From: Mytilus trossulus
Lineage: Eukaryota
Length of the DNA stretch: 64,000 bases
Direction of reading: 5' to 3'
NCBI RefSeq assembly: GCF_036588685.1
Contig: NC_086374.1
Coordinates: 10,726,001 to 10,790,000, forward strand
A model generated the notes under the pieces. It did no database searches, had not been told where the DNA came from, and saw only the letters and a program-made list of their open reading frames with translations. The position numbers and the translations under genes were made by a program. How positions within the stretch are numbered: the first letter of the stretch is position 1; each line of letters begins with the position of its first letter. This document shows, in pieces, positions 6,774-59,842 of this stretch.

Positions 6774-8210
6774 ATATGGCTTCATATATTTGATGTGAGA
6801 ATTGTGTTTCATAGGTGGAATAAAGAAAATTAAGTGTCATGTGTCTAATCTTCTTTTTATTCGTAAAATTGTAGTAATAATTTAGCTTCCTGTTAGATAT
6901 ATAGATAGTGATTGTTTTGTTCTGATTTGTTAGTATGCCTTTTTTTCTTTTTTTTTTTTTTTTTAAATCAAATCGATTGGAGATATTAAAACTAAGGTCT
7001 CTTAAGGTTCTTTTTTGTTTTATATATACACATGTTTCTTCCATATTGTACAAGAATATAAACAGGAATAATTATGCACTTTTAAAACCAGTGTCAATCA
7101 AGAAAACAAATTAACAATGCCATAATTGCATCGCTTGCAAACTGAATTTTTAATTTACCATCCGTCTGGCCAAATTTTGCTGTTTATTTCAATGCTCAAT
7201 AATGTGTACATTGTGTAGACAGCTGATCATTTTATAAACAATGATGTCTCAATTTACTGTTTAAGGTTTGTTTTCATTTTTACAAGACATGATGTGTTAA
7301 TAAAATTGCTGTACAAATATATAGGAAGTTGTTGTATGAGTGCCAATGAGACAACTCTCTATCCAAAGTAACAATTATATGTTGCTTTATTGCCGCATTA
7401 CGCAACTTTTAATAGCATTATGTTCCTCTATTCAAATACTTAAATGTACAAATAAAATAATAAGTGATCCGAAATTATTAGCTGTTTTGTACAGGTTATA
7501 AGCTATAATTTGTAGAATATGTCTGGGATAAAAGCATGTATAACTACGTAATTACTGACAACACGTCAAATATATTTTAGTCCACTGAACTCACGACTAG
7601 AAAAATTCCACTTGAAGTCGAGATTGAGCTGAAGATTGGTAATAATATATGGCAAATCTATCGCAGGGAAAGCTATTATTAATAACGTATATACATACAG
7701 AAACATGAGAAACCGACTTAGACATAAAAACTTTCAGATACAATCCGTGCTAATGTATAACAGTTTCATTTAAAAAAATTAACTGCAATAAACATCCTAC
7801 ATTTTTAAAACGGCATATAAAAACATATGTTACATTAACTGATGATGTAATTTAAATAAGTGCTTTGTATTTTACTTAATGGATGTTAATAGCATTTGTT
7901 GACATATTACTAGTATTTAATGTTCCTGGACGTATTACTTTTTTCGAAACCCTGCACTTGAGTATATTCAATATTGCATGTATATGGTATACTTTAAATG
8001 TTAACATTTTACAACGCAGTAAATGTCACTTTAAAGAGGAATCTTTATATGAAAAACATGCATACGATTTCATATGACATCTTTACCGACATTTTCAATA
8101 TAAACTTTTTCCGGGTTACTGATCAAAATTCCAATATATGGCTTCACATATTTGATGTGAGGATTGTGTTTCATAGGTGGAATAAAGAAAATTAAGTGTC
8201 ATGTGTCTAA
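6774..8210. repeat. 75-bp direct repeat pair (6774-6848 and 8136-8210)
   Basis: ATATGGCTTCAYATATTTGATGTGAGRATTGTG...GTGTCTAA, 2 mismatches. Confidence 0.9.
7270..8060. repeat. Segment duplicated in inverted orientation at about 38590-39430
   Basis: Shared blocks include AAAAATTCCACTTGAAGTCGAGATTGAGCTGAAGATTGGT and AATTTGTAGAATATGTCTGGGATAA, with reverse complements near 39057-39097 and 39166-39190. Confidence 0.85.
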
Positions 8211-9381: not shown

Positions 9382-9810
9382 TTATACATTATTTTGTACC
9401 GTATGTAGTTCTGTTTGACCCTCAATATTAGGTCGTGTACCAACTGACTTGTCGATCATATTTGTATTGTTCTTCGTCGGTTTTTCTTCCAACACACATT
9501 GACATAGTTTTGTAATTAAAGGTGATCTTTTGATAATCGCCTGTTTAAATCCCTCATTTACAAATGCGTAGACGAATGGATTGACACAAGAATTAGCATA
9601 AGAGAGCGTGTGACCAAATAATTTAAAATAGTGCATTGCATCTGTTCTCGGGAAGTTAGGATCGAACTGTATCCAAAGTGCAATCAAATGTATGGGAAAC
9701 CAGCACAAAGCAAACAAGAATACTACTATAGCCACCATTCTCGTTACTCGTTTTTTACGTCGAAGTTGCCTTTCTTGTTTGTCATTTTTAATTGGTAGTG
9801 CAGCTTCGTT
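9382..9810 (-). CDS. GPCR coding exon 4 (ICL3-TM6-TM7-C tail)
   Basis: Acceptor TTTCAG|AAC; RKKRVTRMVAIVVFLFALCWFPIH...NPFVY...NNV then TAA. Confidence 0.93.
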   Translation of the reverse strand, partial: NEAALPIKNDKQERQLRRKKRVTRMVAIVVFLFALCWFPIHLIALWIQFDPNFPRTDAMHYFKLFGHTLSYANSCVNPFVYAFVNEGFKQAIIKRSPLITKLCQCVLEEKPTKNNTNMIDKSVGTRPNIEGQTELHTVQNNV

Positions 9811-12800
9811 CTGAAATGATAAAAATCTTTGTAAAGGCATAAATTTTATAACTACTTTGTGTACTTATCATCTTATATCAATATAACAAAACAACACACA
9901 AAGAGTGAGGCAGAAAAAAAATGAACTGTTGTATGTAATTTTGACAACCTATTAATATGGGTCCCTCTTAGGTCAACTGAACACCCAAATTCACAATTTT
10001 CAAAACATATTTTAATGTTAAAGAGGGGAATTCGGTGACCGACTTGTCTGAATTTCTTCGAAACAATAATCTGTCAAAACCTTGCAAAATTGAAGTGGTG
10101 TTGTCTCATATCTTCAAATTCTTCATTAACGGCGAAATTTACTTTGCACGTCTGATAATTAGCCAAGTTTATTTCTTTATTCGGATGAGGTAAACTCATG
10201 ATAAGTGTTTCTTATGAAAACGACAATAGCTACCAGCATTGTCAACTTGACATTTTGTGTATACTATTAGGTGAAGCCAAAGTTACACATCGATTACTTT
10301 AGTTCGTGGTATTCCTGGAGTTTTATTTGTTATAGAATTGGAACCGCTTGCATTTTACCAAGTTTTAAAAAAAAAGTGAAAGAAGCTGGCTTTTCTCCGT
10401 ATAAGATTTTTGTATTCTTCCATCTTGGGTAACTTCTATTAGTATTGATTTCAACCGATATTTGTGTCATTGTAAATTCACTGTCTATTCATTATTATAT
10501 AATGGTATATTTTAGTTATATTTGTAATGTCAATTTAAGCGTTTTAACAATTATGTGAAATTTCAAACCCTCGGGGGTCCATTATTTGGTGAATGTAAAT
10601 GCCTTCCATTTCTCTGCTTACTTATTGCTAAATGTAATCTACATTTGCATACATGTTTGTGTTATCATGGTTTCGATTATTTACCAACTGATGGTCCAGG
10701 ACATACAAAATGATTTAGAAATAATCAAAATAAATATAACTTAATGTTTGATGTTGATGAATTTCAATTGATTATTTTGTATTATTTCCTTCTTTTTTTC
10801 ATCTTACATAATAATAATTAGTAGCACTGACTTGATCTTTGAGAATATGAAATATATGTCCAAGTAATTTTATTATAGTTAATTAAATGAAAGTGGTTTT
10901 TTTTCTTAAACAAGTTTCACCAGAGAGAATATGCTATTCCCGATTGTGACTTACCAGCCGACGGTTGACTTGTTATGATACCATTAGAAAACCTGAAGTC
11001 ACCTTTCGCATTTGGTAACATGTATGCCCACTTAGCAAAAAAAGCAAGTCGACAAATCAGGTCTCACTACATTCAGATTCCGATCGATTATTACTTTTTT
11101 CTATCCGCTGTTTTGTCTTGATGTGAAGAATTATAATATTAGAACAATACTTTACAAAATCTTAATATGAGCCATTTAAAATGTATGGATAACGTATTAG
11201 TTTGTAACAAAAAAAATATTGCATATCCCTTTTTTTTATTTTCTTAGGATTTTTGGCATGATCACCAATGTACAATATACACATCAATGCTTCTTAATTT
11301 ACACCAAAACCTACGTACAACTCTTTTCTTACCTCGGGCTTTGCTCGTTTCATTTTATTTCCTTTCCACAGATGTTGCAAAATACAGCCATAACATATTG
11401 TTATAGCTGTCATTGGAATAAAAAACGTTGTCATGACAACTGCTAATGTAGTAGTCTTAATCCATTCTGGCCCGGGCCACTTGGGGACACAGTCTAAAAT
11501 GCCCTCATTTCCTGGACGCTCGACTACTGTTTGAAACAGGAAGAATGGTAGTGATATGCTGATTGACACTAAAAAATTAAGTAAAAGGAAAGTATTGTTA
11601 TAAGAAGAACTGTGATCATGTACACAAAGATAGGTACTCTTTTCACTACTGTATTGACCAAAGTATCTTGCAACGGAATATCACTAATCAAATACAAAAT
11701 CATAACCCCAAACACATCAAACGAATACATGACAGCTGTCATATATCTGACTTGGTACATACCGTTTCATATGTAGAAAATGATGGATTAAAGTTGGGTT
11801 TATTTCTATCTAAACCTTTCACTTGTATGACAGTAAATTAGAATTAATGAATGCATTTAAATTCTTTAAATTAGAACTTTTTTGTTATGTCAATCTTTCC
11901 TAATTCCATTAAACTGGTCGTTATTATTTTTTACCTATTCAAAGATTGTATCTCATCTGCAATTATATCACATATTTTTCTTTCGTTTCTATTAATGTAA
12001 ATATGATACTGTTATACGAGAAAAACAATATTTACAAAAATAAACAAAACTGCACACTTTTGCTATATTCCGACCAATACTTCAATACTTAGTGAATGGT
12101 GAAACTATTGCTACATACCTAACCATACATCAAAACAAATGATTAATGAAACTTTGGAAACATACGTGCTCATATACTTCAAGGCTTATGAATAATAAAT
12201 ATTTTGTCACACATCCATTTATAATTCAAGGCTAATCACAAATTAAACTTTGCCGAAATACCTTCTCATACTTCAAGGGTAATACATGATGAAAGTTTGG
12301 CTACAAACCTGCTTATACTGAAAGACTATATGGTAATTATACTTTTGCTACTCAACTACCCATACTTTAAGGCTAATGAAAGATGTAACATTTTCTACAT
12401 TTCTGTCCATACTGCATGATTGATAAATGATGCAATCTTGGCAACACACATTCAGTATTTAATACCAAACTAATAAATCAAACCTTGGCTACATACCTTA
12501 CCATACTCGTATCTAATAAATCAAACCTTGGCAATATACCTTCCCATACTCCTGGCTAATAAATCATACTTTGGCTACAAACCTTCCCATACTCCTGGCT
12601 AATAAATCATACTTTGGCTACAAACCTTTCCATACTCCTGGCTAATAAATCAAACCTTGACTACATACCTTTCCATACTCCTGGCTAGTTAATCAAACCT
12701 TGGCTATATACCTTTACATACTCCTGGCTAATAAAACAAATATTGGCTACATACCTTTCCATACTCCTGGCTAATAAATCAAACATTGGCTACATACCTT

Positions 12801-15800
12801 TCCATACTACTGGCTCAAAAATCCAACCTTGGCTACATACCTTTCCATACTCCTGGCTAATAAATTAAACCTTGGCTACATACCTTTCCATACTCCTGGC
12901 TAATAAATCAAACCTTGGCTACAAACCTTTCCATACTCCTGGCTAATAAACCAAGTCTTGGCTACATACCTTTCCATACTCCTGGCTAATAAATCAAACC
13001 TTGGCTACATACCTTTCCTTACTCCTGGCTTATAAATCAAACCTTGGCTTCATACTTTTCCATACTCCTGGCTAATAAAACAAACCTTGGGTACATACCT
13101 TTCCATACTCCTGGCTAAACCAAGTATTGGCTACATTCATTAGATATAGGAAGATGTGGTGTGAGTGCCAATGAGACAACTCTCCATCCAAATAATAATT
13201 TAAACAGTAAACCATTATAGGTTAAAGTACGGCCTTCAACACGGAGCCTTGGCTCACACCGAACAACAAGCTATAAAGGGCCCCAAAATTACTAGTGTAA
13301 AACCATTCAAACGGGAAAACCAACGGTCTAATCTATATAAACAAAACGAGAAATGAGAAACACGTATATATTACATAAACAAACGACAACTACTGTACAT
13401 CAGATTCCTGACTTAGGACAGGTGCAAACATTTGCAGCGGGATTTAACGTTTTAATGGATCCAAACCTTCTCCCTTTTTCTGAAACAATAGCATAACATC
13501 ACAACATAGAACAACATACGATAAAATATCGATTGGCAGACTTATGTTCATACTCCTTGCTAATAAATTTAAGATTTGCTACATACCTGCCCATACCCAA
13601 ATATGAATAAATGAAACATTGACCAGACCCCTGTCGATACTTTAAGGCTAGTGAAGAATGAAAAACGTTTGCCAGATACATGTATCTACCCATACCTTTA
13701 GTCTAATAAATGACGTAACTTTTGCTACATACCTGCCCATACTCCTAGGCTAATAAATGATGAAACTTTTGCTACGTACCTGCCCATACTCCTAGGCTAA
13801 TAAATGATGAAACTTTAGCAGATCTCCAGTTCATAGATCGTATTGGATTGACTATCGCATGGTATCTATCTATTGTCATGGCCGACAATGTTAAACAAGT
13901 TGCATGTAAAGGCACCTGTAAAATGTTTTAAAGTACATCATAGCCACAAAAATAACATTATTAAAAAAATCTTTTTGAATGGCTTAAGCTTGCGTCAACA
14001 ATTTTAGGTTTATAAATTACGACATGTATAAAATACATTACAAAAATACTGAACTAAGAGGAAAATTAAAAATGGAAAGTTTCTAATCAAATGACAAAAT
14101 CAAATGATAAAACACATAAAACGAATGGACAATAATTGTTATATTCCTGACTTGGTACAGACATTTTCAAAAAATGTAAACAATAGTGAATTGAACCTGG
14201 TTTGATAGCGATAAACCTCTCAATTGTATGACAGTCGCATCAAAATTCATTATATTTACAACAATGCGTGAACAAAAAAAACCATGATGATCGTAATAGG
14301 TAACATATTAAAACTTAATATTTTCAAATTATAAATATATATTTGCATGAACAAGATTTTATTTATTTTAAACAGCTACTGTTTGTCATTTGTTGTCGAC
14401 TGTAACTTTGCTATAATATTTGAACGTTTTCTGCCTGTACACAGGACAATTAATCTTGATTAGCCTTATGTTATAAAATGAACTCGATATCAAATACTTC
14501 ACTTATTTGATTCGATATAATTTCGACATCTTACTTAATGTAATGTCACTAAGAAGCACAGAAGGATGAGAGTGAAACCATTAGGATTCCTTTTATGTTA
14601 TATGTTCAGGAATGATATGTTTGATCGGATAGAAGTCTATTAGACGAAGTAGAAATAAATCCAACAAACCGATTTATCTTATTACACGTAATACTTAATA
14701 AATCAGAAGGGATTTGTGAGAGAAACAAATTAAAAAGTGAACATTCACACAATTTATATAATTACAAAGTCCTATTTTTGTCGCAGTAGAGTTGTCGTAG
14801 TAAGCGTGCCGTGGAAATAATATTTCTTGGATTTTATAAACATGAACATGTAGAATATTAATCATCTTTGCTGGAAAAAAAACCATGCTGATTGAAAAAA
14901 GCAAAACGACCACAACATACAAATAGTGTTCTTTATACGATGAAAAATAGTAAAATCTGTCAACTTTTATGTAATTAAATTTTTTTTTTTTAAAGTGTCG
15001 AAAAATTGAAAGGGAACTAGCTACGAGACATATACAAAAACTCCAATAATACATTTTTTTTGTTCCATCATTAATGAAAATGTAGAACTGAAATAATTTT
15101 TCGCTTTGAGCAGGCAGTTCAGTCATTTTTTTGTCAAAATAAGCTTAAAACCATTATGATCAATTATTCACTAGCAAGTGAACAATTTGACCTCATTGAA
15201 TCCGTATTGATTTGAAATTCAATGTGACCCCTTAGCCAAAGATGAATAACGCTTGAGTTATCCCTGTAAAGTTATTTAAAGGAAATGAATTTCAACATTG
15301 AAAGTGAAACAAATTTAAATAATTTTATTGACTGATTCGATCCACACAAATTAATTCGTATACAGGAAAAAAGATGAACATATATTTTCAATCTTTACTA
15401 TGAAACTAAACAGACCTATAAAAATCTAATTTCATGAGTTGCTAAATCTATTTATATCTATTTCTATGTAAATATCGCTGATATATTGACCGGGGTTGTT
15501 CAGGGGTCCACTTGATGGTTACTTAGAGGGCGTCTCGATGAAAACACATACGGAACGAAACTACAAATTATTGAGCTCATGACTTGAAAACTGTTTATTT
15601 AAGAGAAACAGTAGGTGGGATAAATTTTTATATTGTTATGAGTCGAATCGAAGAACATAAATTTGATAGCTAGTGCCCCTTAAATATAACCCAAATAGAC
15701 ATAAAAGGTAAATGTGAAGGTAGTAGGGATTCAACTACCAAAACTGTGTTAGGATAACCATTGACATTAAACATAACAGATTAAAAGATTTCTACTAACA

Positions 15801-34964: not shown

Positions 34965-35300
34965 TGATTTTTTAAGTTAAAAAAAACTTAAATCACGATA
35001 GATATCAACTTTTAATGATAGTAAGAAACTTTGTTGTAAAACATACAAATTAATGTTTTTCTTCCTTTAATTGTCAATTTTAATGACTTGTCGAGACGCT
35101 GTAAGATTGTTTAATCGATTTAATTGGCATCTTTATACTATTTGATTAAGGATTCAGCGTTGTATTCAAGTAAAGATAATTAAGTGTGACATGCTGTACA
35201 TAATGTGCAGGTTTCATATAACTATCAATTTTGTTCACTTACTTTAACAATTGTAGTACTTACTTTTATACTTTACTTTTACACTTCTAGTACTTACTTT
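34965..35300. repeat. Local direct duplication, second copy at about 40545-40890
   Basis: Shared TCGAGACGCT.TAAGATT..TTAATCGATTTAATT.GCATCTTTATA and TTGTATTCAAGTA.AGATAATTAAGTGTGACATG; both copies lead into the 21-bp minisatellite. Confidence 0.85.
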
Positions 35301-36240
35301 TACACTTTACTTTTACACTTGTAGTACTTACTTTTATACTTGTAGTACTTACTTTTATACTTGTAGTTTTAACAATTGTCCTTGTAGTGTTGATTATTGC
35401 CCTTGTAGTACTTACTTTTCCTTTGTAGTACTAACTATTGTCCGTGTAGTTCTTACTGTTGCCCTGGTAATACTACTTATTTTCCTTGTAGCACTTTCTA
35501 TTGCACATGCAATAATAACTATTGCCCTTGAAGTACTTATTATTGCCCTTGTATACTCATTATTGCCTTTGAAGTAGTTGCTGTTGTCTATGTTATATTG
35601 ACTATTTCCCTTGTGGTACTTTCCATTAGACCTCAGTCATCATTTTTTATTTAAAAAATGTACACAATATTTCACTATTTTCTTCAAATTGCAAGCTTTG
35701 AACTATTGGACCTCGGTGAAACTATTTGACCGCAACCGTCATCATATTTCTCGAAATTTCAAATGCAGCTACGAGATTGGCTAATTTTGAGAATGCCGCG
35801 GGGGTTACAACGTAGAGTGTTACCTCTTGTTACTAGGGATAACGTAGCTTTACTTTTCAGAATATATATGAATGTAAACTTGACACAATATGATTGTATT
35901 TCTGCTCTTTATATTACGATAGTTGATTTATCCCCGACATTTATTTTCTGATATCTATTTCGGTATAATAAAACACTTGCTTACTGGATATTTGTGAAAT
36001 AGTCAGTTTATTGTCCCCTCGGATACAATATTTCCCCATGGCTACGCCTCAGGGCAATACTAGTTACACCACGGGGACATTAAACGGACTATTTCACTCT
36101 TATCCAGTCAATAAGTATACACTATTGCCCTTGTTGTACTTATGTTTGCCCCTGTAGAACATACTACTACCCTTGTAGAACACACTATTTCCCTTGCATA
36201 ACACATTATTTCCCTTGTAGAACATACTAATTCCCTTTTG
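35250..36240. repeat. 21-bp minisatellite interrupted by a hairpin-ended element
   Basis: Unit TTGTAGTACTTACTATTGCCC at 35250-35630 and 36115-36240. Confidence 0.85.
35640..36112. mobile_element. Hairpin-ended element (Crypton-like)
   Basis: Hairpin at 35983-36108 with centre GGCTACGCCTC; GATTGGCT motif inside. It splits the minisatellite; the left boundary is approximate. Confidence 0.65.
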
Positions 36241-39660: not shown

Positions 39661-41291
39661 TGTGTTTTTAGCTTTGTATCACCATCAATAGTGATCTGAT
39701 GGATGAAAAGTGTCGTAGAGTTATCATTGGTTCCGACGTAAATGTAGTTGAATGTTATAGACGTGGATGCATTTGGCGATAAATGTTTGCACTATTATAA
39801 TGACTACGACTTCTTATTCTAATTTGGTGTTATTCAATTGATTCAGTAGTGAAAAAAAATGGAATAAGGAAGGGTTTTTGGCAAGCCTTATTGTTAAAAC
39901 ATTGGTCTTTTTGCTGGTTTCGCAATAAAACTTTTAAGCTAGAATTCCAGCGAAAATACAAATATACTGAGCACATGTGCAATCCAAAAATTAATTAAAG
40001 ATACAAGGCTTATATAGTGTATACACCAGACGGTTATAAGGATATCATCAGTAACACTCGATTCAAATTAATAATAAATTACAAAGGCAAAGCGGTCAGA
40101 AGTTGAAGACATTGCGAACTTAGAAACATATGCGCCATGCATATGAACCCAATGGGGTTAAATAAATGTCACCCATGAAACTAATGTATCAGTTAGATAC
40201 ACAGCTCGTTGTTTGGCAGACATTAAGTGATTCTTTCTTTGAATCACTTTCTATGTGAAGTTGACTTTGGAAGTAGGAATTCACTCAATTTCTACAAACA
40301 CCTAGAAAATAATTATTTCGTGTAGTATCAATGATCTCTAAGAATCAAATTTTCAACAAATTAAATAGATGAAAAAAATGCCAATTTTTCCAAAAATATC
40401 TACAGTTTTCTAGATTAAAAGAACACATGAATACCAGATAATGAAGAACAAACACTTCTCAAATAAGTAAACATTTCACATTTGAATTATGTGACTGTTC
40501 GGATAGACTTATTATAGTAAGATTGCAAGCTTTCGCTTTGGCTATAATTTTTTAAGTTTAAAACAATGGATATTAGTTTTGATTTGCAACTTTTAATGAT
40601 CGGAAAACGTGTTGTGAAACAGGACAATTATTTCTATTCTTCCTTTAATTATCCATTTTAATTACTGATCGAGACGCTTTAAGATTTCTTAATCGATTTA
40701 ATTAGCATCTTTATATTATTTGCATCAGCCTTGTATTCAAGTACAGATAATTAAGTGTGACATGATGTACACAATGTACAGGTTTATAATAACTAAGTAT
40801 TTTAACAGTTACTATTGCCTTTGTAGTACATACTTTTGACCTTATAATACTTATTATTGCGCTTTTTATCCTTACTAGTAGTACTTACTCCGTGCAAACG
40901 CATCGTTTAAGTTTTTTTCAGGGTGATTGGCTTGTGTTGTTTGTGCTTTTTTGTTTTATTGTGTTTTGTTTTTTTATTTTGTGATGTGTTTGTAAAATGA
41001 TTGTCCTATAGCATAAAAAAATACCCATTCATAATTTTAAAACCATTCGTTTTTCGTTAATTGTTTTACACAAATAAGGCTGTTAGTTTTCTCGTTTGAA
41101 TTGTTTTAGATTTTCATGATCATTTTGGGGCCTTTTATAGCTCACTATGCGGTATGAGCTCTGTTCATTGTTGAAGGCCGTACGGTGACCCATAGTTGTT
41201 AATTTATGTCATTTTGGTCTCTTATGGACAGTTGAAATCATGCCACATCTTCTTTTTTTTATTTTTATTTTTAAGATTATTTTAATACCTT

Positions 41292-44194: not shown

Positions 44195-45358
44195 GTAGGT
44201 AGACACTTCTATCGTATAGAAAACTTGTTATCATCCGAATACAAACATTTGACTGAATACATCAGCCGCTCGGAAACATAAATCATAATGTTTTATTGTG
44301 TCTAGTATCGACATATGACGTTATTGAAATATCTCTATCAAAATACAAACTCAAAAAAAGGGCAATTTAACGAAAACGTGCAAAATCTATTGTAAATTCA
44401 AAATGCTCAATGTTTATTTTAACATGTGCATATCAGAGGCTGTTCTATAGGAAAACAAAGTAAAACAAAACATCTACGACACCACGAATGTACTACAATT
44501 AAATGTTGTCAACAGTCATCAATAATGAATAATGCACCAAATACACATCAAACGTGTTAGAACAAATTCAAACTACATAAATGGATAAAGTTTAACAAAG
44601 TTTAGATAATCGCATTATAAAGACAGGTCCCAAGTACACACAGTACATCTATAAATTTGCTTTACATGCGTCATAAAGAAACTGCAAAGAAGGACCAGAT
44701 TTAAATAATATGTTATAGAGATAATAATTTTGCTCAAAATATAATGACATGAGAAATACACAATCACCGAACTCTGAAATGTAAGATTAGTTTGTTCCTT
44801 TTTCAGTTTAATAAAAAGAACAGACCGAACCAACTATTCGCCAAATGGCAGCATGTTCGTTTCTGTGTTGATTACACGTCAATTGATATCAAATCATCGA
44901 AAGCGATGATCAAATAACAGTGGCATGTAAATGAAATGATGATAGAATTACTGACCTACTATATTGGTAATTTAAATCAACTGTCACAATATATCTGTAA
45001 CCTGCCAAACAGTTTGTTCTAATACCACTCTGTCCATACAGCGATATGTAATGTCCGATTGAAAATCTTAGCATTGACCGTTTACATCATACAGATGTAC
45101 AATATTTTGTTGTATGTATTTAACCAAGAAAACAAGCAGTTGAAACACTGCAATTATAGTCTCTCTTAACTTTTTCTTAAACTCTTATACCTAGTTCAAT
45201 ATAAATTTGACAAGAACTTCCAATCAATTGAGTTCCAACTAAGGAAATTTATAATTTACATTTGATCTTGAACTATTATACTATTAGTTAGTACAATGTT
45301 TTCCCTTCACCACGTACAACAGTTATATGTAACTGATAGTGTATGTTAGGCGTCTCTG

Positions 45359-46252
45359 TAACTGTGCCCCTCTACTTGCCGACTTATTTCTTTATTATTA
45401 TGAGGCTGACTTCATGCAGGAACTACTTAGGAAGAAAGATAAGAAGTTAGCAATACCCTTTAACTTTACTTTCCGCTATATAGATGATGTTCTTTTACTA
45501 AATAATTCAAAATTTGGTATCTATGTGGAACGTATCGATCCCATTGAACTAAAGATACAGGATACTACAGATACAGTTAATTCGGCTTCATATCTTAACT
45601 TACATCTAGAAATTGACAATGAGGGTCGGTTGAAAACAAAACTTTACGACAAAAGAGATGATTTCAGCTTTCCAATTGTGCACTTTCCATTTCTAAGTAG
45701 CAACATTCCAGCAGCACCTGCATACGGGGTATATATCTCCCAATTGATACGATATTCCCGCGCTTGCATTTCCTATCATGATTTTCTTGATAGAGGTTTG
45801 CTGCTCACAATGACGCTATTAAACCAAGAGTTTCAAATGGGGCAGTTGAAATCATCCCTTCGTAGATTTTACGATCGCAATCACGAGTTGGTTGACCGTT
45901 ATGGAATAACCGTTTCACAAATGATATCGGATATGTTCCTTACGTCGTAACTACAATCCACTTCCCTTTCATGAATGTGACCTACCGAATTAAGACTATT
46001 TACCGGATTTGTTATCACATCAGCAACACGACGGGTGCCACATGTGGAGCAGGATCTGCTTACCCTTCCGGAGCACCTGAGATCACCCCTAGCTTTTGGT
46101 TGGGTTCGTGTTGTTTATTCTTTGGTTTTCTTTGTTGTGTCATGTGTACTTTTGTTTGTCTGTTTGTCTTTTTCACTTTTAGCCATAGCGTTGTCAGTTT
46201 GTTTTAGATTTATGAGTTTGACTGTCCCTTTGGTATCTTTCGTCCCTCTTTT
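45359..46252 (+). mobile_element. 5'-truncated Penelope-like retroelement (family 1): RT C-terminal half plus 3' UTR
   Basis: Open frame NCAPLLADLFL (motif B), FRYIDDVL (motif C), SYLNLHL, YDKRDDF, SNIPAAPAYGVYISQLIRY (thumb). The ORF stops at 45950 with no GIY-YIG domain following. Confidence 0.92.
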
Positions 46253-51140: not shown

Positions 51141-51455
51141 TTCTTAATTTAGCTTAACAAATTGTTCAGTTATACATATAAATATTTCCAATTTAGCCTT
51201 ATATAAATGTTTCCTTTCTCAATTTTAACGTATATATAAAAAAAAAAAAAAAAAAAAAAAGATGTGGTATGATTGCCAATGAGACAATTGAAGTCTGGAG
51301 CTGGCATGTCAATTAACTGCTAGTAGTCTGTTTTTATTTATGTATTATTGTTATTTTGTTTATTTTCTTTGGTTACATCTTCAGACATCAGACTCGGACT
51401 TCTCTTGAACTGAATTTTAAATGTGCGTATTGTTATGCGTTTTATTTTCTACATT

Positions 51456-51547
51456 GGCTAGAGGTAGAGCGGGAGGGTTGAGATCTCATAAACATGTTTA
51501 ACCCCGCCGCATTTTTTGCGCCTGTCCCTAGTCAGGAGCCTCTGGCT
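51456..51547 (+). ncRNA. Type-P5 twister ribozyme (family A, variant)
   Basis: Same fold as 51638-51728, with L4 UCCCUAGU and one P2 mismatch; predicted cut 51499/51500. Confidence 0.7.
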
Positions 51548-51637
51548 TTGTTAGTCTTGTATTATTTTGATTTTAGTTTCTTGTGTACAATTTGGTTTCT
51601 TGTGTACAATTTGGTTATTCTTTTACTTTTCTACATT

Positions 51638-51728
51638 GGCTAGAGGTATAGGGGGAGGGTTGAGATCTCATAAACATGTTTAACCCCGCCGCAATTTTGC
51701 GCCTGTCCCAAGTCAGGAGCCTCTGGCC
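51638..51728 (+). ncRNA. Type-P5 twister ribozyme (family A, intact)
   Basis: P5 GGCUAGAGGU/GCCUCUGGCC; P2 GGGG/CCCC; L1 GAGGG and U^AA; GCC; P3 GCAA/UUGC; P4 CCUG/CAGG with loop UCCCAAGU; T1 GGG:CCC; predicted cut 51681/51682. Confidence 0.85.
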
Positions 51729-52473
51729 TTTGTTAGTCTTGTATGATTTTAAATTTTAGTTTCTTGTGTATAATTCGGAGTTTAGTATGACGTCTATTAT
51801 CACTGTACTAGTATGCATATTTTTAGGGGCCAGCTGAAGGACACCTACGGGTGTGGGTATTCTCGCTACATTGAAGACCCATTGGTTGCCTTCGGCTGTT
51901 ATCTGCTCTATGGTCGGGTGGTTGTCGCTTTGACATATTCACCATTTCCTTTCTCAATTTTTTATGCACATTCATGACTCTGCAATATGTTGATACCTGT
52001 ATTTAGGCATTGCAAAGGGTCGTATTCTTATGACTATCTATGACTTCTTTACACCAAAACCATTGGATATTTGACGTGTAACGATTGATAAGTTATTCTT
52101 AGATGCATGAATTTTTTTTTTATTAATTATTTTTGGCTTTGAACGAGCTGATAGTAACTGCGATTAATCTGTACTTAGTGTCTTTTTGTTGTTGTACACG
52201 TGTATTCGTTAGATGTATTTCTATCCATCTTTGGATGTGTCCGCTTACATATTTAACCGAGTCAAATTATGTATGTGCCTGTCCAACGTAAAGAGTCTGC
52301 AATTCAGTAGTTGTTGTAAATTGCTGTTTAACAAATTTGTTTTTCTATCATTATTTTGTAACTAATTTTGTCCTCGTTTGAATTCTGTTATATAAACGTT
52401 TTTCTTTTAGATTTACCTATCGTTCTGTTTTTATTTGCTAAGCTAAATGAGAAACGATAATATAATAGAACAT

Positions 52474-53069
52474 AAAATTTAGAATGGAAATTGGGAATGT
52501 GTCAAAGAGACAACAATTCGACCATAGAAAAAACAACATCAGAAGGTCACCAACAGGTCGTCAATGTAGCGAGCAACTCCCGCATCCGGAGGCGTCCTTC
52601 AGCTGGCCCCTAAACAAATATATACTAGTTCAGTGATAATGAACGCCATACTAATTTTCAAATTGTACACAAGAAACTAAAATCAAAATAATACAAGACT
52701 AACAAAGCCAGAGGCTCTTGACTAGGGACAGGCGCAAAAATGCGGCGGGGTTACACATGTTTATGAGATCTCAACCCTCCCCCTCTACCTCTAGCCAATG
52801 TAGAAAATAAAACGCATAACAATACGCACATTTAAAATTCAGTTCAAGTGAAGTACGAGTCCGATGTCAAAAGATGTAGCAAAAGAGCAGATAACAGCCG
52901 ATAATGGACGTCATACTAAACTCCAAATTATACACAAGAAACTAAAATTTAAAATCATACAAGACTAACAAAGGCCAGAGGCTCTTGACTTGGGACAGGC
53001 ACAAAAATGCGGCGGGGTTAAACATGTTTAAGAGATCTCAACCCTCCCCCTATACCTCTAGCCAATGTA
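52474..53069 (-). mobile_element. Family-A element with two twister units (52706-52796 and 52973-53063)
   Basis: Reverse complement of the units in 51380-51960. Both twisters carry a P4 mismatch (CCUG/CAAG). Confidence 0.85.
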
Positions 53070-58158: not shown

Positions 58159-58260
58159 ATGACCATATTCCTGACTTGGTACAGGAACTTTTTTTAAAGA
58201 AAAAAATGGTGGGTTGAACCTGGTTTTGTGGCATGCCAAACCTCCCTCTTTTAGGTCCAT
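58159..58260 (-). ncRNA. Type-P5 twister ribozyme (family C) within an element at about 57823-58290
   Basis: GACC..GAGG-GAGGU-U-UGGCAUGCCA-CA-AAACCAGGUU-C^AA-CCC-ACC-[U/A stem]-CCUG-UACCAAGU-CAGG-A..GGUC; T1 GGU:ACC, T2 AC:GU. Confidence 0.75.
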
Positions 58261-59456: not shown

Positions 59457-59642
59457 ACTGAATAATAATCCTGGTACTTTTGATAACTAATTAGATTATT
59501 ACATATTGATGGAATGTGATGCAACTGTTATATAATCCATCTTTTGATTTCAAATGTTTGGCTTTGAGGGATCCTCGTGAAGGTGGTTTCAGAAAAGCGC
59601 CTCGGACGCAAGAAATTAGTAAACGTGTTGTTTTCAATATAT

Positions 59643-59842
59643 TATACAAGTTAGAGGTTTAGCTAGCTATAACACCAGGTTTAATGCACTATTTTTTATG
59701 TAAGAAAATGCCTGTATCAATTCAGGAATATGACAGTTGTTTAAATTCGTTTGATGTGTTTAAGCTTCTGATTTTGCCATTTGATTAGACACTTTCCGTT
59801 TTGAATTTCCGCGGAGTTCATTTTTTTGTGAATTTACTTTTT
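59643..59842 (+). mobile_element. Family-B 3' part with a decayed twister
   Basis: GAGGU-U-UAGCUAGCUA-UAACACCAGGUU-UAA...GCCUG UAUCAAUU CAGG A AUAUGACAGUUG. Its 5' P5 strand CAACUGUUAUA is displaced to 59522 by an insert. Confidence 0.65.

Follow-up and report, generated by a model that had tools for sequence, protein, structure and literature searches.

Organisation of the module at 51638-51728

The DNA analysed here is a continuous stretch of 64 kb (the window). At 51638-51728 on its plus strand lies a module of about 90 bases in which all the core elements of a twister, in type-P5 order, can be read from the sequence. Counted with its homologues, the module is present 15 times in the 64 kb, and the genome contains thousands of copies at the least. 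An earlier reading of the window, made from the letters only (the sequence-only reading), had proposed a type-P5 twister at this site. Its reading of the letters matched the sequence, and the proposed architecture was borne out in the order of the elements, the core letters, the helices and the pseudoknots. The elements, all on the plus strand and all read from the sequence, are as follows.

51638..51728 (+), intact family A module; Rfam Twister-P5 23.4 bits, model R1 (described below) 77.6 bits
51638-47 with 51719-28 (+), P5, 10 bp including 2 G.U pairs
between P5 and P2' (+), junction AUA
51651-54 (+), P2' GGGG
51655 and 51656 (+), catalytic-position G51655 and A51656, before T1'
51657-59 (+), T1' GGG
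between T1' and U^AA (+), linker of 21 nt
51661-70 (+), palindrome 1
51671-82 (+), palindrome 2
U51681/A51682, then A51683 (+), predicted cut, from the N^AA motif
51684-87 (+), P2 CCCC
G51688 and C51689 with G51712 and U51713 (+), T2
51690-701 (+), P3 hairpin
51702-05 with 51714-17 (+), P4 CCUG/CAGG, followed by A and then P5'
51706-13 (+), L4 UCCCAAGU

RNAfold predicted P5, P3 and P4 of the plus strand unaided (z -2.4), and the minus strand of the module folded no better than shuffles. The minimum-energy fold of the plus strand was -36.8 kcal/mol and contained an alternative helix, in which T1' and its neighbours pair with the cut site and P2. The nested twister helices came to -31.6 to -32.4 kcal/mol, pseudoknots not counted. 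Since the competing fold is lower in energy, the pseudoknots would have to supply the difference.

Copies and families in the window and in the genome

We built a covariance model (R1) from 15 copies. At E below 1e-4 it detected 15 modules in the window, a density of about one every 4.3 kb. Besides the intact module described above they are as follows, all detected with R1.

51457..51547 (+), family A copy, 182 nt upstream of the intact module in partial tandem; P2' changed to GCGG, L4 to UCCCUAGU
52706..52795 (-), family A copy on the inverted arm; L4 and P4' mutated
52973..53062 (-), family A copy on the inverted arm, 267 nt from the 52706 copy; P4' CAAG, P3 mutated
13400..13483 (-), intact family D module, 82.7 bits; the D tail spans about 13300-13544
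58159..58260 (-), family B module, 75.3 bits; no Rfam match on a B copy
11735..11834 (-), family C module, old and diverged; P5 CUGUCAUA/UAUGACAG
14134..14236 (-), family C module
59638..59737 (+), decayed C-type copy, 59.4 bits
50920..51017 (-), decayed C-type copy, 56.1 bits
42255..42352 (+), decayed C-type copy, 47.5 bits
28546..28653 (+), decayed C-type copy, 45.7 bits
34454..34549 (-), decayed C-type copy, 42.8 bits
28324..28421 (-), decayed B-type copy in repeat D20, 40.5 bits
20704..20803 (-), decayed C-type copy with L4 destroyed, 27.2 bits

The intact D module has P5 UCAGA/UCUGA, P2 GGGA:UCCC, T1 AGG:CCU and an A^AA cut motif. The B module at 58159..58260 (-) has T1 GGU:ACC, T2 of A:U plus C:G, and a P2 of 2 pairs only. 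The T1 types and P5 sequences that the sequence-only reading had assigned to the families were all as stated. The four family A copies that it listed are indeed present, but three of the four are mutated in P2', L4 or P4. It had also treated B and C as equally good twisters; this is not supported, only 2 of the 4 P2 pairs being formed in them.

The very high copy number that had been anticipated was evident both in the window and in the genome (1.3 Gb), where candidates ran into the thousands. The genomic counts come from a first look at candidates and are all lower bounds: at least 410 candidates for family A (92-100% identical), at least 1131 for family D (97-98%), at least 2582 for family B (91-94%) and at least 4790 for family C (about 85%).

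A further family, E, was newly seen at three loci, L051:1998-2084 (+), L005:2855-2941 (+) and L019:463-607 (-). It combines an A-like core with its own P5 (CAGGU/GCCUG) and its own P3, followed by D-like downstream sequence, a layout suggestive of recombination between the lineages of A and D. In the window, the spacer between the two inverted family A tails contains the decayed 3' half of one family E module, at 52269-52330 (+).

Detection by descriptor and by Rfam models

We searched with a strict descriptor requiring P2 and P4 of at least 3 bp each, GANNN with NNN pairing to L4, N^AA, an L4 of the form U NNN AAG Y, and a T2 in which RC is present and its R pairs with the last letter of L4. 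The 64 kb window contained two sites only, 51638-51728 (+) and 13407-13474 (-). Shuffled windows gave 0.3 matches each on average, and these were weak, AT-rich and without P3 and P5. Among 300 kb of other loci from the same genome, the descriptor found families A, D and E many times, together with 3 AT-rich minimal chance matches. Only A, D and E passed; in these the core letters (N^AA, GA before T1, U NNN AAG Y in L4 and RC after P2) are present and P2 and P4 are 4 bp each, whereas B and C fail with their crippled P2.

The sequence-only reading had looked to a match with the Rfam twister-P5 model, and here the outcome was negative. With Rfam at the gathering threshold, no match, including no hammerhead, was obtained in the whole 64 kb window. 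When 126 nt around the family A module were searched, Twister-P5 (RF02684) matched 51651-51717 over the full model (positions 1-58) with 23.4 bits and E 0.0026, which falls short of the gathering score of 37.6 bits. The inserted P3 and the atypical linker plausibly explain much of this shortfall. Single D and B copies gave no twister match even at E 10, and a search of 1.9 kb returned a chance snoRNA match only. Genome-wide, RF02684 gave three matches of 23-25 bits, none of which was family A.

The best of the three (24.9 bits), at L002:1501-1640, has a differing sequence, GCCGGUCCCAAGCCCGG-AUAAA-GGAG-GAGAG, which is reminiscent of a Schistosoma-like type-P1 twister in its 3' half and is directly joined to the 3' half of a D module.

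We also scanned metagenome data with the P4-L4 motif. The majority of the 120 loci obtained were chance matches; two were near-identical A copies (L147 and L208), and 2-3 were decayed relatives. The relatives are so few that cross-species covariation is not obtainable from them. Twister-like modules were seen in metagenome contigs at L187:63-140, L186:1706-1795 and L094:4499-4586. The L187 module looks like type P1 (A^AA-CUCC-GCC...CCUG-UCCCAAGU-CAGG-AUAAA), and the L186 module has T1 GGU:ACC together with GCC.

Paired changes between families

Since the families are homologous, the letters that they have in common prove little by themselves, and it is the differences between families that matter. 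We therefore compared the paired elements across a set of 15 copies from five families.

Family A: T1 GGG:CCC, T2 G.U plus C:G, P2 GGGG:CCCC
Family E: T1 GGG:CCC, T2 G.U plus C:G, P2 GGGG:CCCC
Family D: T1 AGG:CCU, T2 G.U plus C:G, P2 GGGA:UCCC
Family B: T1 GGU:ACC, T2 A:U plus C:G, P2 2 pairs only
Family C: T1 GGU:ACC, T2 A:U plus C:G, P2 2 pairs only

T1 was paired in 95.6% of cases, with two-sided changes at 2 of its 3 pairs (GC/AU at one and GC/UA at another). Its covariation score was 0.294 as against 0.148 in shuffles, and none of 500 shuffles reached 0.294. When the T1 partners were slid by 1-3 columns, pairing fell to 56% or less. Because T1 changes on both sides in three combinations, common descent alone is insufficient to account for it. 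In P2, families A and E differ from D by a compensatory change (GGGG:CCCC to GGGA:UCCC), and one family A copy has AGGG:CCCU. Seven copies have A:U as the outer pair, and 6 have G:C. Of the four P2 pairs, B and C form the two outer ones and not the inner two.

P5, P3 and T2 were read per family and not counted by column, as MAFFT cannot align stems that have no common sequence. P5 was represented by five unrelated sequences of 5-10 bp and P3 by four different hairpins, and unconstrained folds of each family put P5 and P3 at the same positions. Invariant columns in the 15 copies of the five families were the A preceding P2', the A of the GA motif, both A's that follow the cut, and U and AAGU of L4; the core letters as a whole, with the RC after P2, were invariant or nearly so. 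Variants within a family are mostly decay in dead copies and hence give no evidence of selection. The paired changes that the sequence-only reading had described between families thus hold for T1, T2, P3, P5 and the outer P2 pairs, and do not hold for P2 as a whole in B and C. The fold is very probably a genuine twister fold on which selection has acted in the A, D and E master copies.

Carrier elements

Copies of A, B and D have a fixed common 3' end and variable 5' ends, with the module on the sense strand. Four long A copies (L010, L024, L027 and L014) retain upstream homology over 1.4 to more than 1.8 kb, across a reverse transcriptase (RT) frame with motifs B and C; in L010, L024 and L027 the homology extends at least 1.8 kb upstream and spans such a frame. 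In L056, L042, L057 and L043 the D tail is likewise continuous with such a frame. The RT frames of A and D are 68% identical over 255 residues, and each stops after the RT, with no endonuclease following. As the frames end at the RT upstream of the module, its place is in the 3' untranslated region: the RT stop codon precedes it by about 320 nt in A and 640 nt in D, and the 3' end of the element follows after 240-330 nt.

With Pfam, nothing matched the frames at E 0.01, and at E 10 only RVT_1 appeared, weakly (E 0.026). The nearest Atlas clusters of the frames were HTH_animal/RVT_1, commonest in Mollusca. A related RT frame, in L009, has 34% identity (E 4e-13) with the one that precedes an A tail, and carries a DKA motif (PADKAPNNIVFV; PADKA). 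The motif was thus seen on a 34%-identical relative, the DNA compared for A and D covering other parts of the element. DKA, in place of the DKG of Penelope, is diagnostic of Naiads (Craig et al. 2021, PMC8557442), and Naiads dominate bivalve genomes and are reported without canonical hammerheads (PMC8557442). Reading frames near C copies in the window gave no family match.

The A copies around the module at 51638-51728 belong to a complex insertion of two 5'-truncated A tails placed tail to tail.

51366..53069 (strand not assigned), complex insertion with arms 51366-51961 and 52474-53069

The arms are 80-99% complementary, each contains an internal partial tandem, and they are separated by a spacer of 512 nt. 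Such an arrangement fits the insertions of Penelope-like elements (PLEs), for which 5' truncation, partial tandems and adjacent inverted truncated copies are described (PMC8557442). Of the two origins suggested for the repeats in the sequence-only reading, terminal repeats of PLEs gained support from this tandem-plus-inverted insertion and from the contiguity of A and D with RT frames at several independent loci. By their sequence, the carriers are 5'-truncated tails of Penelope-like, Naiad-type RT elements, the N-terminal GIY-YIG and CxC that define Naiads being expected upstream of the DNA compared, and the thousands of interspersed copies would mostly be dead, 5'-truncated element tails. 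A SINE with a common core domain (PMC4758252) was also considered as a carrier and dropped; the repeats are without a tRNA-like head and continue upstream into RT frames.

A motif of about 40 nt at the end of the D elements (..TTGTCTCATTGGCA..CCACATCTTC..) recurs alone in the window at 1327, 8541, 25922 and 60426 (+) and at 7319, 13144, 33444, 51252 and 54408 (-), which suggests further families with the same tail. An RT fragment with motifs B and C, belonging to the superfamily of the carriers, lies at 45333-45947 (+) with no R1 module downstream.

Palindromes in place of P1

The canonical P1 is absent from the module, as the linker of 21-24 nt forms no hairpin abutting both GANNN and N^AA. 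In its place every family has a first palindrome, perfect and of 8-10 nt.

Family A, first palindrome UGAGAUCUCA
Family D, first palindrome UGGAUCCA, variant UGGGCCCA
Family E, first palindrome GGGAUCCC
Family B, first palindrome UGGCAUGCCA
Family C, first palindrome UAGCUAGCUA or UAGCGCUA

A second palindrome in A, D and E reaches up to or across the cut site, and overall the palindromes measure 8-12 nt. Changes in them are compensatory and include the central pair, as in the change from GGAUCC to GGGCCC within D. The central letters would have no need to pair if they lay in a hairpin loop; that they covary nonetheless points to a duplex between two strands, and so suggests that two RNAs pair. 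Homodimers were predicted to be 5-17 kcal/mol more stable than two monomers. Two precedents are relevant here: the hammerheads of PLEs, which have a palindromic loop or stub, cleave as dimers and are slow even then (PMC6765202), and a twister without P1, in which weak cleavage survives (PMC8501958).

RNA reads at the predicted cut sites

Four raw RNA-seq runs with the same species label were mapped to L042:1300-2500, a stretch with one intact D module, its predicted cut at 1600/1601, and one A module, with the predicted cut at 2147/2148. Reads were accepted at 90% likeness or more, and were thus drawn from all members of the families. Depth at the D and A cut sites was 70-570x in both strand classes and ran smoothly, without a dip. 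The active cleavage proposed in the sequence-only reading was not seen: in the four runs no pile of read starts or ends reached a fifth of the depth at either predicted site, and the sole position with such a pile was L042 2382. Nor did the four runs contain reads with back-joints at the D or A cut site. A frequent back-joint from 2188 to 1650 in L042 could be read as a circle; this was rejected, as the reads come from family E, in which an A module is followed by the D downstream part.

The unbroken depth across both sites indicates that most of the RNA containing the module is uncut, which argues against a fast, monomeric ribozyme. Efficient in vivo cleavage of single copies is not supported. 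Cleavage in below about a fifth of the molecules, only in dimers or tandems, or limited to certain tissues, is compatible with the reads.

Interpretation and alternatives

We consider, at a probability of roughly 0.55, that a permuted type-P5 twister fold is kept by selection in the 3' untranslated region of Naiad-type PLEs and cuts itself mainly as a dimer. Catalysis is what we infer from the letters and the fold; bulk RNA shows none. Self-cleavage would fall between U51681 and A51682, with G51655 and A51682 in the roles known from other twisters, and the module would take the place that hammerheads have in other PLEs. Activity would be expected mainly when two modules pair, be it in two RNAs or as both copies of a partial tandem, as P1 is replaced by two palindromes that covary to the centre. 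Single copies inside host transcripts would remain largely uncut.

A chance resemblance, or ordinary hairpins of a conserved SINE or retroelement core domain, has in its favour the Rfam scores below threshold, the 0.3 chance matches per window given by the descriptor and the homology of all the families, by which common letters may be plainly inherited. We regard this as very improbable, because the chance matches are AT-rich and minimal, whereas in the module P3 and P5 stand exactly where twisters allow optional stems, the linker (21 nt) is close to the P1 hairpin of the model (20 nt), and the long-range T1 pairs are altered on both sides in three combinations. An alternative with a real, if smaller, chance of being right is that the fold descends from a ribozyme and is kept for a non-catalytic role, as a handle for the RT or as a palindromic site of dimer linkage, with little or no cleavage. 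It accords with RNA reads that bear no cleavage signature, with the absence of P1 and the greater stability of the competing fold, with the predicted stability of palindrome dimers, and with the spread of B and C to thousands of copies despite a crippled P2. However, the letters that stay constant across the five families are the catalytic and tertiary-contact letters of twisters, which a handle or a dimer site does not need, and the T1 and T2 pseudoknots are likewise needless for a protein handle or a dimer site. For these reasons we hold it to be unlikely, although not remotely so.

The other origin put forward in the sequence-only reading was a twister retrozyme, i.e. a non-autonomous tandem repeat whose transcripts are cut at each module into monomers that are circularised and copied back. 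Two partial tandems in the window, with spacings of 182 and 267 nt, speak for it, as does the position of the cut, which in this permutation lies mid-ribozyme so that one cut parts its halves. Yet 28 of 29 further family A loci have a single module, the copies are 5'-truncated tails of RT-encoding elements, and the reads hold no back-joints at the cut sites, the one from 2188 to 1650 being due to family E reads. The retrozyme reading is thus not supported, and we judge it improbable.

Our preferred reading of a permuted twister kept in Naiad-type PLEs can be carried further. Naiads may never have lost a ribozyme, a dimer-only permuted twister standing where the hammerhead stands elsewhere; it would cut unit-length RNA from partial-tandem transcripts or from paired RNAs, so that the ends carry the ribozyme halves, and P5, P2 and T1 would hold these ends together for ligation or template jumping. 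We offer this extension as a speculation, more probably wrong than right by a wide measure. If it were true, the origin of the pseudo-LTRs of PLEs would be explained, and a self-cleaving ribozyme of some class would be required for PLE retrotransposition.

Comparison with known systems

The closest known fold is the type-P5 twister (Rfam RF02684, clan CL00120; Roth et al. 2014 as cited in PMC10085705). The module resembles it in the order of elements, in P2, P4 and the optional P3 and P5, in T1 and T2, and in N^AA, GA before T1 and the 8-nt L4 (U NNN AAG Y); the distance from GANNN to N^AA is 21 nt here and 20 nt in the type-P5 model. It differs in having two palindromes for the P1 hairpin, a P3 that costs score in the type-P5 Rfam model, a score below gathering, and a cleavage that is predicted only. 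Its host is an animal retroelement, as against a bacterium for the type-P5 twister. The P5 permutation of the twister is otherwise known mostly from bacteria, and the module would be an abundant animal example of it.

Hammerheads are present in the pseudo-LTRs of PLEs (Cervera and de la Pena 2014; Lunse et al. 2017; reviewed in PMC6765202). Like them, the module is a small ribozyme motif of the self-cleaving kind, placed close to a PLE's 3' end or terminal repeat, with tandem and inverted insertions and with a palindrome for the closing stem that implies action as a dimer, cleavage of single copies being slow or undetectable. Unlike them, it is of the twister class, and its carriers belong to the Naiad clade, from which canonical hammerheads were reported absent (PMC8557442).

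T-variant twisters lie at the 5' end of Perere-3/RTE retrotransposons of Schistosoma mansoni (PMC8501958; PMC7761336). They too join a twister core to a non-LTR retrotransposon, with weak or absent P1 and a very high copy number. However, the T-variant is of type P1 and is cut just upstream at the 5' end of the element, so that the whole ribozyme remains in the copy, whereas here the fold is permuted and lies in the 3' untranslated region, where a cut would split both the ribozyme and the element RNA. Animal retrozymes form tandem arrays of 170-400 nt that give abundant circular RNAs (PMC7229834). The module has in common with them an abundant non-coding repeat with a self-cleaving motif, RT supplied in trans, and short tandems in the window; it departs from them in that single truncated tails make up most of the copies, and in that the RNA reads gave no circle junctions.

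We found no paper linking twisters to PLEs; the links in the literature examined are to RTE-type elements (PMC8501958, PMC7761336). The module would be the first twister tied to a PLE, and it is a candidate for a twister that acts as a dimer. The mechanism of PLE retrotransposition is poorly understood, and the lack of hammerheads in Naiads was taken by Craig et al. 2021 (PMC8557442) as a hint that ribozymes may be dispensable for, or parasitic on, PLEs. That conclusion would be turned round by a twister fold that is conserved and covaries at the corresponding position. If sister clades have ribozymes of two unrelated classes at one and the same site, this would speak for a part of self-cleavage in PLE retrotransposition. 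It is sobering in this respect that the RNA reads are without efficient cutting of the many embedded copies.

Other features of the window

Satellites of 43-nt and 47-nt units occur at 12090-13242 and 13570-13835, on both sides of the D tail (13300-13544). Two arrays 5 kb apart, at 35265-36240 and 40800-40885, repeat with a period of 21 nt (TTGTAGTACTTAC...-like units). A rhodopsin-type G-protein-coupled receptor (Pfam 7tm_1, E 2e-17) is represented by its C-terminal half in the open frame at 9382-9840 (-), probably an exon of a host gene.
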